Sequence record: OP617745.1
Strand: one strand, 5' to 3'
DNA length: 64,000 nt
Shown one piece after another: positions 1 through 64,000 of this stretch. Position numbers and translations under genes: made by a program. A model generated the notes under the pieces. It worked only from the letters and a program-made list of their open reading frames with translations. It was not told where the DNA came from and made no database searches. Positions within the stretch are counted from its first letter, which is position 1. Each line of letters begins with the position of its first letter.

Positions 1-666
1 CATCTTAATGGCGAAATCACCCGCCGCATCAGCAGCGGTACTTAGTAGTGGAACTACGGTAACGCCATCTTTAGCCAGCATTGGAACACCAGTAAGATCA
101 TCAATCAACAGACGACCTACTTCTTTTTCAGTACTTGGAACACCCTGGAAGGAACGAATGTTTTTATCAAATACATCAGCACGTTCGATCATAAAGGTAA
201 CAACAGTAGCAGCAGCGATTGAAGCAGTACCTACAGAAAGAACACCATTTGGTGCATTGGTAAAATCTTCAATAGCAACACCAGTAGGATTGCCAGCGAT
301 TTCAGAAGTACTCAGAATAACTGCACGTTGCTGGACGATATCAACAATACGTTGTAGATTCAGTTGAGCAGCATAGGCAGCATTGTAATCAGCTTCAAGT
401 GTCGCAACAACGAATGGAGTACCGTCAACGCGGATAATACCTTTTTCGTTAAGATAAGCAACGATTACTTCTGGTAGTTCAGTGTTTAGAAAACGTTGAA
501 CACCGACAAATGAACTAATTGCACCAGTAACCATAAAATCAACATTACCTAGTTTACTTACAGCGATTGATGCAAGGGCATTCTTACCATAGAAGTAGCC
601 AAGTACTTTATCATAAGAAAAGCCATTAATACGTTCAAATTCGGTATTAGTAGTATTAGTAGCCAT
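1..666 (-). CDS. Probable virion structural protein, paralogue of 682..1290; runs off the window start
   Basis: ATG at 666 opens a stop-free frame to position 1 (MATNTTNTEFERING...VQQRAVILSTS...TFMIERADVFDK...), with an RBS-like AGGGGA upstream. Not in the ORF track. Shares motifs with the neighbouring gene. Confidence 0.8.
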   Translation of the reverse strand, partial: MATNTTNTEFERINGFSYDKVLGYFYGKNALASIAVSKLGNVDFMVTGAISSFVGVQRFLNTELPEVIVAYLNEKGIIRVDGTPFVVATLEADYNAAYAAQLNLQRIVDIVQQRAVILSTSEIAGNPTGVAIEDFTNAPNGVLSVGTASIAAATVVTFMIERADVFDKNIRSFQGVPSTEKEVGRLLIDDLTGVPMLAKDGVTVVPLLSTAADAAGDFAIKM

Positions 667-681
667 AGTTAATTCCCCTTA

Positions 682-1290
682 TTATAGTTGTACTGGTAGA
701 GCAGCACGTACTTTAACAGCAGCAGCAGTAGCTGCACCAGCATTACCGCTTGCACCAGTACCACTTAGAGCATCGACAACGGCATCTTTAGTACGGAAAA
801 TACCAGCCTGTACCAGTGCTTTAGCTAGATCTTCTGCTGGGTTAACAGGGACGTCATAAGCAGCACCTGGACGTTTATCTTGTTTGTTGAATACGTCTTG
901 GCGTTCGATGATCCAAGTAATAGCAACAGAACCAGCACCACCAGCAACATCAACGCCGCTGGTTGCAAATGCAACTACATTAGCAGAAGCGGTTTTGAAA
1001 TTGGAAGGGATAACAACATCAGTATCAAATGCAATTGTAGAAGTAGTAACCAGTACTGCACGTTGACGTAGCAGTGAAGTAATTACGAACTGATTGTATT
1101 GAGCATTGGTTAGTGCAGTTTGAAGTGCCTGATCTTGTTCTTCAGAACCATCAGAAGTTACTTTGGTATGACCAACTTCAACATCAGTTGGTAGATCAAT
1201 TACTACGGTTACGAAACCGTTATTACCACCCCACCATTCGCGGCTATCAGCACTCATACCATAGTTGCGGTTAAAAGAGTTAAGACTCAT
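682..1290 (-). CDS. Probable virion structural protein (Ala/Val-rich)
   Basis: 202-aa ORF with GGAG RBS and an upstream TAAATA late-promoter-like motif (1342-1347, minus strand). Function is not recognised. Confidence 0.6.
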   Translation of the reverse strand: MSLNSFNRNYGMSADSREWWGGNNGFVTVVIDLPTDVEVGHTKVTSDGSEEQDQALQTALTNAQYNQFVITSLLRQRAVLVTTSTIAFDTDVVIPSNFKTASANVVAFATSGVDVAGGAGSVAITWIIERQDVFNKQDKRPGAAYDVPVNPAEDLAKALVQAGIFRTKDAVVDALSGTGASGNAGAATAAAVKVRAALPVQL

Positions 1291-1424
1291 AAAAAAATCT
1301 CCTTAGTCAATTTTGTTGTAAGTTTTCACCTTACTTAAAGTTATTTATCAAAATAAATCAGACCCCATTAAAATATAATAAAAAAGTCCAATTTTAACAT
1401 AATAATATTTATCTTTTAAATATT

Positions 1425-1453
1425 TGAACGAATTAAAATCTAAATGATATAAT
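1425..1453 (+). promoter_or_regulatory. Promoter TGAACG-N17-TATAAT (extended -10)
   Basis: TTTGAACG...TGATATAAT upstream of rnh; the motif recurs before several replication genes. Confidence 0.65.
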
Positions 1454-1489
1454 ATTATTGCTTATTATGAAATGAAACGGAGTTCATAA

Positions 1490-2476
1490 ATGAAAAAATT
1501 ATACCTATTAGTTGATACACAAAACTGTTTCCATAGAAGTATCAATGTATCATCACAAAGTGTCGATATCTGGACAAAAGTAGGACTTGCCCTGCACATC
1601 ACGCTCAGTGGCCTCAAAAAACTTCAGGACATGTTTGATCCTAATCACGTTGTATTTTGTAGTGAAGGAAAATCATGGCGTAAAGAATTCGATGAAGATT
1701 ACAAACGAAATCGTTCAGTAAAAAACGCCGCCAGATCTGCACAAGAAAAAGAAGAGATGAAAATTATGTTCGAAATGATTAACGATTTTGTAGACTTCGT
1801 TGATACTAAAACGAACAGCACTCTTTTACGTTTACCTAATACCGAAGCTGATGATTTTATCGCTCGTTGGATCCAAACTCATCCAGAAGATGACCATATT
1901 ATAGTCAGTACTGATACCGATTTTAGACAACTTCTTTCACATAATGTACGCCAATATAATCCAGTACAGGAATATATGTATACTATTGATGGTGTTTATA
2001 ACAACAAAGGTGAAAAAGCAACTGATAAAAAAGGTAAAGAACTGGAAACTCCAAATCCAGAATTTTTGCTATTTCAAAAATGCATTAAGGGTGATACTTC
2101 TGATAATGTATTCAGTGCATATCCTGGTGCTCGAATGAAGAGTACTAAAAAAGCAGTTGGTATAGAAGAAGCATTTAATGATCGAATCAATAAAGGTTAT
2201 GCATGGAATTCATTCATGAATCATAAATGGTTGCGTCATGATGGAGTGGAAGTAACTGTAAAAGATGCATACGCCCACAATCAAGTACTGGTTGATTTGA
2301 CAATGCAACCACAGCATATCAAAGATGCAATGGATGAACTTATCAACAACAAAGAAGTTAAAAGTATTCAAATGGTCGGTGTTCATTTTTTGCGATTCGC
2401 CGCGAAGTACGAATTAGTTCATATTCAACGAAGCCCAGAAAGTTATGTAAAACTGTTTATTAAAAAGGACGAATAA
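1490..2476 (+). CDS. rnh: RNase H / 5'-3' exonuclease (T4 rnh-like, FEN/PIN fold)
   Basis: LLVDTQN, EGKSWRK...[21 protein letters not shown] and GDTSDNV motifs. Confidence 0.9.
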
Positions 2477-62759: not shown

Positions 62760-62780
62760 TACACAATCATACTCACAGTT

Positions 62781-62810
62781 AAAAAGGTTCCACTTCTGGA
62801 ACCTTTTTTT
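62781..62810 (+). terminator. Intrinsic terminator
   Basis: AAAAAGGTTCCA-CTTC-TGGAACCTTTTTTT. Confidence 0.8.
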
Positions 62811-62827
62811 AATATTGGAGGTTATTA

Positions 62828-63508
62828 ATGACAAAGTTGTTATCACTTGATATTGAATCATTTGGTGTACCTGAACGTTCTGGGTATAATATCGTAGTAC
62901 CAAATTATGCGGTTGTGCTTATCCCAGATAATCCCATGCATTTAATTGAATCTTTTTCGTATGTAAAACTACCATTTCAACCACAAGTGGAAAATGGATT
63001 AAAAGTTGATGCAGGTTCGATGGATTTTTGGTTCAATGAATGTAGGAAGTATTACCCAAATGCACTAAATGAAGTTACAAGTACTTTCAATTTAAAAGAA
63101 CCTGAAGTTTATCAAGTAACAAAATCTTCTAGATTTAAATCCAATGATGTTATTTCTATGTGGAAAGACCTCAGATATAATATCTATGGTGAAGAAGAAT
63201 CGTTGGAAATTTGGGGCAATGGTTGTAACTTTGATTGTAGTATTTTACAAGCAAATCATTTACTTCAATTCAATAAAGGTGACTTGTGGAATTATGCTTC
63301 ACCACAAAACGCCCGTTCTTTAAAACGATTGTTAAGTGCTGAAGAGCGTGAAGAAATGGATGAAATTGTTAAAAAACAGTTATTAAAATTCACTGACTTT
63401 GCAGCAGGGCATGGTTTTAACGCACTGGAACTGCATCACCCATTATATGATGCGGCACGAGAAGCCATTCAGATTTCTTATTGCTTGAATAAAAAATCAT
63501 CAAAATAA
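62828..63508 (+). CDS. DEDD 3'-5' exonuclease (DexA-like)
   Basis: SLDIES, IWGNGCNFD and HHPLYDA motifs. Confidence 0.78.
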   Translation: MTKLLSLDIESFGVPERSGYNIVVPNYAVVLIPDNPMHLIESFSYVKLPFQPQVENGLKVDAGSMDFWFNECRKYYPNALNEVTSTFNLKEPEVYQVTKSSRFKSNDVISMWKDLRYNIYGEEESLEIWGNGCNFDCSILQANHLLQFNKGDLWNYASPQNARSLKRLLSAEEREEMDEIVKKQLLKFTDFAAGHGFNALELHHPLYDAAREAIQISYCLNKKSSK

Positions 63509-63573
63509 AAGTTGAAAAAATTTTGAATACAGGATATACTAGTTATATCCTTTTTAATTTAAGAGATGATCAA

Positions 63574-64000
63574 ATGTTAAGTTATGTCATTTTGTTACTA
63601 CCTGCACTTATTGTTATGTTTGTGATGAAATACATTTATAACAAAGAAATTAGTACCAAAGAATTTTTGATTCATGGGGCTATTTGTATTATTAGTGCAA
63701 CTGTTGTATTGGCACTTTCTTATGCAATAAATTACGCTTCATTGACTGATACCCAGATTTTAAATGGTAAAGTACTAAGTAAGAACAAACACGTTGAGAC
63801 TTGTACTCAATATAGCTCGTGTGAGCATTATTATGTAAAAGAAAAATGTCATTATTACACAGATAGTAAAGGAAAACGTCACAAAAGTTGTGAAACATAT
63901 AAAGTGTTTGATTATCCGTATGAAGTTGACTGGTATGTCAATACCAGTGTGGGTGACTTCAAAATTAAACGAGTCAACCGACAAGGTACTACAACACCAA
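63574..64000 (+). CDS. Membrane protein, partial (runs off the window end)
   Basis: Open frame MLSYVILLLPALIV...DTQILNGKV...CEHYY... with two transmembrane segments and no stop. Not in the ORF track. Confidence 0.75.
   Translation, partial: MLSYVILLLPALIVMFVMKYIYNKEISTKEFLIHGAICIISATVVLALSYAINYASLTDTQILNGKVLSKNKHVETCTQYSSCEHYYVKEKCHYYTDSKGKRHKSCETYKVFDYPYEVDWYVNTSVGDFKIKRVNRQGTTTP

Follow-up and report, generated by a model that had tools for sequence, protein, structure and literature searches.

AGTACT, an iterated palindrome of RaK2-like jumbo phages, is kept dense by a force acting on DNA and may tag phage DNA as self

The stretch analysed here (the window, 64,000 nucleotides in all) comprises bases 1-64000 of Klebsiella phage KP13-7 (OP617745.1), with which it is identical in sequence. 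KP13-7 is an Alcyoneusvirus of the RaK2 group of jumbo phages, with a genome of 357.7 kb and 32% G+C. Throughout the window the palindrome AGTACT is present in large excess; it ranks first of all 4096 hexamers and is followed by its own extensions CAGTAC and GTACTG. Our leading, still tentative, explanation is that AGTACT may be the preferred word of a two-fold-symmetric phage DNA-handling protein, held by weak selection on each copy and acting as a self-tag.

An earlier reading of this DNA from its letters alone (the sequence-only reading) had reported a window-wide enrichment of GTAC, citing 12 GTAC against 4 GATC in 1-1060 and 8 against 2 in 42601-43000. These hand counts were exact, and the enrichment extends over the window, where 398 copies of GTAC stand against 184 expected from mononucleotide composition or 268 from a second-order Markov model (z 10), the strongest over-representation among the 256 tetramers. 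The same reading had named a codon-preserving shuffle as the test that would refute it. The excess persisted when protein sequences and per-gene codon usage were held fixed and synonymous codons permuted (386 vs 283 +/- 11, z 9), and again in the strictest of the three protein-preserving nulls used, which keeps every protein, codon usage and all dinucleotides (386 vs 313 +/- 9, z 8). The identity of the word, on the other hand, had to be revised: the real motif is not GTAC as such but AGTACT, or more fully CAGTACTG, and AGTACT carries the whole GTAC excess (about 100 sites), with TGTACA, GGTACC and CGTACG at or below expectation in the window. The 139 copies of AGTACT (21 expected by composition), 25 of which are CAGTACTG, are dispersed over positions 1-64000 in genes of both strands and between genes, at a mean spacing of about 460 bp. 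Against the shuffles the counts were 133 vs 42 with proteins preserved and 133 vs 55 with protein, codon usage and dinucleotides kept (z 15-17, and z 15 in the latter). Expressed as ratios, AGTACT is enriched 6.6-fold over composition and 2.4-3.2-fold over protein-preserving shuffles, and CAGTACTG 47-fold and 4.6-9.7-fold, respectively. The excess is uniform, at 3.2-3.3-fold, across five separate regions of KP13-7 and RaK2.

The cause of this excess lies at the DNA level. The sequence-only reading had argued as much from the occurrence of sites in differing reading frames, and the argument is borne out by enrichment in every frame and in non-coding DNA. Split by frame, the observed and expected counts are 78 vs 27 for AGT-ACT, 10 vs 1.9 for nAG-TAC-Tnn and 45 vs 13 for nnA-GTA-CTn; since each frame frees different motif positions to vary, all six positions must be under pressure. 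Intergenic enrichment barely holds for GTAC (12 vs 9) and does hold for AGTACT in larger Alcyoneusvirus samples, where non-coding copies are 8-10-fold enriched (16 vs 1.8, 19 vs 2.0, 15 vs 1.3). Relatives were sampled in parts of their genomes, and their open reading frames were called mechanically. RaK2-like phages fill 47-68% of the positions at which AGTACT could be written silently, where codon usage predicts 10-17%, whereas in T4 the proportion is 5-7% and matches expectation. The pressure extends to the dipeptide content of the proteins: Ser-Thr is 1.4-2.1-fold and Val-Leu 1.2-1.8-fold over-represented, and the reversed Thr-Ser and Leu-Val are not. T4 (1-50 kb) also shows an asymmetry of Ser-Thr over Thr-Ser (1.31 vs 0.77) without AGTACT enrichment, so that the Ser-Thr excess of RaK2-like phages may in part reflect a property of proteins in general.

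An explanation in which the excess only mirrors amino-acid, codon, dipeptide or dinucleotide usage could draw on a GTAC density that is higher within genes (6.4 per kb) than in intergenic DNA (3.3 per kb), on AGT and ACT being common codons, and on a phage-borne tRNA-Ser(GCU). The three shuffle nulls refute it, including the one with all dinucleotides kept, as do the enrichment in three frames and in non-coding DNA and the lack of any AGTACT excess in T4, which has a similar G+C content; its probability is practically nil. The tRNA-Ser(GCU), a reader of AGY and hence of the Ser codon of AGT-ACT, is located at 35975-36063 of KP13-7 segment L002 and at 32529-32617 of segment L006, and the phage Thr tRNA has the anticodon UGU and is not ACT-specific.

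The motif is a symmetric word with graded dependence on the quality of the match. C is favoured at the position before AGTACT (-1) and G at the position after it (+1), with weak T/T and A/A preferences farther out; the information is confined to 12 bp, and the weak preferences reach TTCAGTACTGAA. Over shuffles, CAGTACTG is enriched 9.7-fold in Alcyoneusvirus and 7.6-fold in Mimasvirus-like phages and XaC1. The enrichment falls to about 3-4-fold with one optimal flank, about 2-fold with none and 1.4-fold for TAGTACTA. One-sided variants at the outer positions (TGTACT/AGTACA, GGTACT/AGTACC) are themselves 1.3-1.7-fold enriched, and inner-position variants stay near 1.0.

That the signal is specific to phages of this kind, as the sequence-only reading supposed, is supported by its presence in RaK2-like phages of different hosts and its absence from T4. 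AGTACT ranks first of 4096 hexamers in RaK2, and it is also the top hexamer in E. coli phage ph0011 (Asteriusvirus), in the Mimasvirus members Pectobacterium phage CBB and Erwinia phage Kaldavass, in Erwinia phage Hallingskeid, in Xanthomonas phage XaC1, whose primase is only 46% identical, and in 7 of 7 close IMG/VR relatives. The observed and expected counts in Kaldavass and Hallingskeid are 96 vs 23 and 68 vs 16, respectively. No AGTACT enrichment was found in Vibrio phage 2.275.O (syntenic, 349 kb, primase 44% identical), in T4, in Atu_ph07 or in about 60 environmental T4-like phages. Pseudomonas phage PA5oct avoids the word (0 vs 7.3 in the 25 kb of segment L094, rank 4094 of 4096). This distribution indicates that the trait follows the phage lineage and not the host group. 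A search of the literature found no report of over-representation of AGTACT, or of the ScaI site, in RaK2-like phages. Other words stand out in other genomes: PA5oct, a distant relative in which AGTACT is treated in the opposite way, is enriched in GGCGCC and GCGCC-type words, and many IMG/VR T4-like contigs (L039, L051, L054, L056, L061, L062, L078, L083 and others) over-represent the non-palindromic AGCGGC/GCGGCA, for example 14 vs 1.8 (z 10). IMG/VR contig L071 has an enriched palindrome of its own, TCCGGA (14 vs 3.1, z 6.9), so that lineage-specific iterated palindromes may not be unique to RaK2-like phages.

Individual AGTACT sites turn over, and it is the density alone that is kept across the lineage. 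Of about 60 aligned sites, only 9-11 are common to different genera, no more than for control hexamers; for KP13-7 and ph0011 the common fraction is 17%, inside the control range. Column identity at the sites is 0.61-0.65 (0.64 for KP13-7/ph0011), not above the mean of 0.68. Four Alcyoneusviruses of about 97% identity have 87 sites common to all, and among close relatives AGTACT is lost no less often than control words. In newly acquired DNA the word builds up slowly. Within the KP13-7-specific insertions inside nrdA (31870-35869, plus strand) 4 of 17 silent opportunities are filled, and in a gene not found at this place in RaK2 (22098-23726, plus strand) 2 of 10; taken together, 6/27 (22%) are filled in these inserts and 115/254 (45%) elsewhere (Fisher p 0.024). 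Long-resident homing-endonuclease genes are saturated (41-56%), which together with the under-saturated inserts indicates that AGTACT accumulates with residence time. The nrdA gene of KP13-7 (30877-36407) is itself in at least four coding pieces, at 30877-31755, 32453-33163, 33892-34917 and 35850-36407, which still match the intact NrdA of relatives; in RaK2 it is a single uninterrupted gene. The open reading frames between the pieces (31870-32256, 33225-33938 and 34898-35869) are without counterpart in relatives, and the interruptions look like several intron, intein or homing-endonuclease insertions.

The genes among which the sites lie form a T4-like replication and recombination module, with RNase H, large terminase, SSB, UvsX, UvsY, UvsW, a split Pol III alpha-like polymerase, a gp61-type primase, a gp41-type helicase, NrdAB, DHFR, a Mom-family protein, Dda and topoisomerase II. 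Interspersed among these genes are those of many virion proteins without assigned function and several homing-endonuclease genes. The intergenic hairpin noticed earlier at 37687-37717 (plus strand) was confirmed and contains two AGTACT copies; it is of terminator type, lies 3' of nrdB, carries AGTACT in each arm of the stem (TTCAGTACT / AGTACTGAA) and is followed by a T run. Comparable stems built from AGTACT are found in RaK2 (segment L007, near 11313, 23621 and 38289). An intergenic copy at 60383-60388 has a promoter-like context, with TTGACA upstream and the motif overlapping the -10 region. As a general promoter element, however, AGTACT was rejected, with only a weak association between the two (11/216 promoter-like hits with the motif vs 6.6 expected). 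A few early-type promoters and terminator stems apparently use the word because their positions are free to vary. Several early-type sigma-70 promoters of the tRNA region (about 31900-38100 of segment L002 of KP13-7 and about 29700-36200 of segment L006) have in common a spacer end, (T)TCAGTACTG, directly before the -10 box, the final G of which gives a TGn extended -10, as in TTGACA-N15-AGTACTGATACAAT.

Restriction-site avoidance, in which palindromes are depleted, does not describe AGTACT, which is enriched in the window. Avoidance of this kind does occur alongside it: GCGC is absent from the window (0 vs 40 expected by composition), CTGCAG and CAGCTG are absent from the window, RaK2, ph0011 and CBB, GGTACC (KpnI) is absent from ph0011 and CBB, and GATC is mildly depleted. 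Within the genes of the window, synonymous shuffles also reveal strong avoidance of TAAATA (27 vs 63 expected), TATTTA (17 vs 47) and AAAAAA (170 vs 276); the first two could be shunned as words resembling T4-type late promoters and the last as a slippery run.

From these patterns we infer a protein reader, maintenance by selection rather than by drive, a role as self-tag and, for the reader, a topoisomerase as the leading identity. In the self-tag reading, the iterated palindrome with CAGTACTG as its optimum would be written into the DNA and not into proteins or codon usage, and a phage-encoded protein of two-fold symmetry would recognise AGTACT on duplex DNA genome-wide. Each copy would confer a small advantage that scales with the quality of its match, and a balance of mutation and selection would leave about half of the silent opportunities filled while copies come and go. 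Through its rarity in host DNA the tag would concentrate the reader on phage DNA. T4 distinguishes its DNA from that of the host by base modification, and the sequence tag would be a stand-in for that modification in telling own from host DNA. AGTACT occurs 0.06 times per kb in 50 kb of E. coli K-12 (1.00-1.05 Mb) and 1.4-3.2 times per kb in the phages; with about 20-50-fold fewer copies in host DNA, the word could work as a tag of self. In the K-12 sample AGTACT is about 4-fold under-represented (3 vs 11.6), and two of its three copies are the full CAGTACTG. That RaK2-like phages mark their own DNA by a dense tag instead of a modified base, and that a phage DNA-handling enzyme reads this tag and ignores the host chromosome, is possible, if doubtful.

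Candidate readers of such a tag are topoisomerase II, a packaging or protective protein and a nuclease-sparing factor. Topoisomerase II is the most concrete of these because A*GTAC.T resembles the gate site of a type IIA enzyme with its 4-nt stagger. The window encodes a T4 gp39-like large subunit (47283-49250, plus strand) and a T4 gp52-like DNA-cleavage subunit (50979-52385, plus strand), each a candidate reader by this inference only. Type IIA cleavage preferences are two-fold symmetric and lie within -4 to +8 around a core a*GNNCt, and the consensus of Streptococcus pneumoniae topoisomerase IV is G(G/c)(A/t)a*GNNCt(T/a)N(C/a) (PMC3814380). AGTACT has the symmetric gate-site form, with A at -1, G at +1, C at +4 and T at +5, a likeness confined to form. 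Both the enzyme preferences and the phage word have two-fold symmetry around a 4-bp stagger, and the phage motif spans 12 bp; the former, however, are drug-trapped cleavage preferences of cellular enzymes and not genome-enriched words. We know of no topoisomerase that has shaped the oligonucleotide content of a genome. That the phage topoisomerase II reads AGTACT seems rather improbable.

A number of observations weigh against the self-tag reading. No lead to a reader came from Pfam searches with 30 conserved hypothetical proteins encoded in the window or from atlas searches with three clade-restricted proteins; a comparison of gene presence and absence across the syntenic module gave none either. 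The topoisomerase II sequences track the distribution of the motif, but phylogeny alone predicts that pattern, which is therefore compatible and not diagnostic. T4 and the Vibrio phage have the same type of topoisomerase without the motif, and any need of a topoisomerase for a sequence tag is a matter of conjecture. AGTACT is just 1.08-fold above the prediction from its two 5-mers, indicating that the halves of the motif contribute independently, which suits a dimer with additive half-site energies and equally suits a strand-specific word counted on both strands. Sites are conserved no better than control words, unlike what is reported for HIP1 (PMC5861425). In the four closely related Alcyoneusviruses, 5 singleton gains and 10 losses compare with expectations of 3.5 and 15.9, respectively, a direction that fits a bias in an underpowered comparison and is not significant. 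Finally, the gaps between sites are near-exponential (coefficient of variation 0.92, largest gap 2.1 kb), so that even spacing or avoidance of long gaps was rejected; the low variance per 2 kb is a consequence of about 50% saturation. Near-random spacing and unexceptional conservation of sites are expected of weak additive selection, and also of neutral drive.

Among the explanations considered, the self-tag is favoured, function-free drive comes second and a primase word third. Molecular drive, in which biased repair, gene conversion or DNA processing would convert DNA to AGTACT without any function, has proposed precedents in very short patch (VSP) repair and CCWGG, in uptake sequences and, at one time, in HIP1, and T4-like phages recombine heavily. 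It would account well for a pressure blind to context, which fills synonymous sites, dipeptides, promoter spacers and terminator stems alike, and for near-random spacing, the turnover of sites at no better than control conservation, and the partial conversion of newly acquired DNA. The sequence-only reading had proposed a repair process converting near-matches and had suggested a check for depletion of GTAT/ATAC; neither tetramer is depleted against synonymous shuffles, and the proposal failed more broadly. No one-mutation neighbour of AGTACT is consistently depleted (AATACT/AGTATT at 1.00, 0.69 and 1.08 in three regions), neighbours with an outer mismatch are enriched where drive should consume them, and six to eight positions are all under pressure, while to our knowledge no short-patch system acts on so many. 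VSP repair by Vsr/Dcm in E. coli resembles the present case as a DNA-level process that raises the genome-wide count of a short palindrome, CCWGG, but its substrate is a single T:G mismatch within a methylated site, and it leaves the deamination product depleted. For AGTACT the corresponding products, AGTATT/AATACT, are not depleted, every position is pressured and two relatives give no methylation signal; near-match conversion of the Vsr type was rejected on the first two grounds. A methyl-directed scheme of that type would moreover be without its mark, because no modification is reported in Kaldavass or Hallingskeid (PMC11780129). No vsr-like gene was identified, the whole 358-kb genome not having been searched for a vsr homologue. 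Drive as a whole we regard as unlikely. Methylation, which the sequence-only reading had also suggested, fared worse; here a phage- or host-encoded enzyme would modify AGTACT/GTAC for an epigenetic role in strand discrimination, replication timing or protection. RaK2-like phages do encode DNA methyltransferases, RaK2 DNA resists many restriction enzymes (PMC3622015), and two orphan methyltransferases have targets that overlap HIP1, the closest analogue (PMC4390886). Native-versus-amplified nanopore sequencing of Kaldavass and Hallingskeid, however, recovered GATC, CCWGG and TGCAT only, in two phages with the same enrichment and with AGTACT as top hexamer, so that no modification is called at AGTACT or GTAC in either relative; the study was able to detect nicks and reported none for Kaldavass (PMC11780129). 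Of the two RaK2 enzymes, one is a DNMT3-like C5 methylase of CpG type and the other belongs to the phage Dam family (PF05869), and the Mom-family gene of the window is confined to Alcyoneusvirus. On the strength of the methylomes of these two relatives and of these enzyme types methylation was rejected and is left very improbable. The Mom-family protein (PF25680, E 2e-37) is single-domain, is encoded at 41723-42307 between DHFR and Dda and offers zero AGTACT opportunities; in ph0011, CBB, Kaldavass and XaC1 a small RNase H-like gene takes its place. Just beyond the window, at 72931-73818 of KP13-7 (L002:22931-23818), lies a phage C5 DNA methyltransferase whose closest similarity is to the catalytic domain of mammalian DNMT3A/B (E 4e-22) and exceeds by far that to the bacterial enzymes M.HaeIII and M.HhaI, a likeness that fits the CpG methylation reported for RaK2 (PMC3622015).

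Two further explanations invoke a protein that reads the word for another purpose. The gp61-type primase (T4 gp61-like, 19176-20234, plus strand) might need a 5'-GTACT(G)-3' template for a pentamer primer pppAGUAC, the density of the word being selected for Okazaki spacing; since GTAC is self-complementary, the primase words of the two strands would overlap as a palindrome. The independence of the motif halves (ratio 1.08) fits this explanation, as do one-sided words at 1.3-1.7-fold beside about 3-fold for the two-sided word, and a word length equal to the T4-type pentamer plus one cryptic base. The per-strand densities, about 1 per 290 nt for GTACT and about 1 per 700 nt for GTACTG, lie within the range of T4 Okazaki fragments. 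The zinc-binding domain of the primase, however, does not co-vary with the motif: XaC1, which has the motif, differs from the enterobacterial phages at 9 invariant positions where the Vibrio phage, which lacks it, agrees with them, and the reverse holds at 2 (in the catalytic core the same contrast is 6 vs 19), and the XaC1 domain carries a 4-residue deletion. Were the word read on a single strand, its self-complementary core would be a coincidence of about 1 in 16, and known DnaG/gp61-type primases read trinucleotides. We regard the primase word as a long shot. In the XaC1 primase (L090:20001-21026) the zinc-binding domain is unusually divergent relative to the rest of the protein and to the other replication proteins of XaC1, and the deletion sits in the knuckle. 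An alternative with only a very slight chance is that the copies bind the host nucleoid-occlusion factor SlmA and thereby block or derail host division. Many phages block host division, and Enterobacterales, the hosts of most of the lineage, have SlmA. The 12-bp SlmA site, GTGAGTACTCAC, has AGTACT as its central six bases, and SlmA strongly requires G1, T2 and a purine at position 3 (PMC3020112). Like AGTACT, the SlmA-binding sequence is a scattered palindrome, in its case in the chromosome of an enterobacterium, where a dimeric helix-turn-helix protein recognises it. The phage copies lack the arms on which SlmA depends, and these are even disfavoured: about 380 kb contain 0 full sites and 0 AGTACT copies with both arms, one-arm copies are below chance (8 vs 14), and at the base before AGTACT C is preferred and G depleted. 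The host distribution does not match either, with the motif present in Xanthomonas phage XaC1 and absent from Vibrio phage 2.275.O, whose host presumably has SlmA, and on both grounds SlmA sites were rejected.

The closest system in kind is, by analogy, HIP1 of cyanobacteria. HIP1 (GCGATCGC) is likewise a short palindrome many-fold over-represented genome-wide, in all frames and between genes, and across a lineage (PMC5861425, PMC4390886). AGTACT exceeds both composition and coding constraints many-fold, occurs in all reading frames and in non-coding DNA, and is lineage-wide (positive in 6 named phages and in 7/7 IMG/VR relatives) while absent from other relatives. HIP1 sites are in addition reported to be positionally conserved and periodically distributed, and they overlap the targets of two orphan methyltransferases (PMC5861425, PMC4390886). 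In contrast, AGTACT sites are conserved no better than controls, their short-range spacing is near-random, and no site modification is reported in two relatives; neither the methylomes of Kaldavass and Hallingskeid nor the RaK2 enzymes give an overlap with the target of a cognate orphan methyltransferase. AGTACT further differs in belonging to the genome of a virulent phage, in being a 6-8-mer and in its smaller enrichment (6.6-fold for the hexamer, 47-fold for the octamer). The uptake sequences (USS/DUS) of Haemophilus and Neisseria and the Chi sequence of E. coli are dense self words, read by DNA-processing machines and rare in foreign DNA. Like AGTACT they are tolerated inside genes and shape peptide content; unlike it they are asymmetric, orientation-dependent and have known readers, whereas AGTACT is a palindrome in a phage.

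Phage genomes are noted for the loss of palindromes, and here one accumulates, kept across phage genera that infect at least five host genera although each copy is replaceable. This implies a strong, continuing force at the DNA level that the annotated functions of RaK2-like phages do not explain. In practical terms, AGTACT density provides a one-line classifier of the lineage in metagenomes, flags recently acquired DNA in these genomes and predicts ScaI fragments of about 0.5 kb from RaK2-like DNA. If drive were the cause, these phages would offer a clean, small and tractable model for the 30-year-old HIP1 problem. If instead the self-tag reading is correct, AGTACT would represent sequence-based discrimination of self from non-self in a virus, reshaping codon choice and dipeptides over 350 kb, and would show by what means a phage that lacks hypermodified bases distinguishes its own DNA from that of its host. 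It would also give a handle on replication and packaging in therapeutically relevant jumbo phages of Klebsiella, E. coli and Salmonella.

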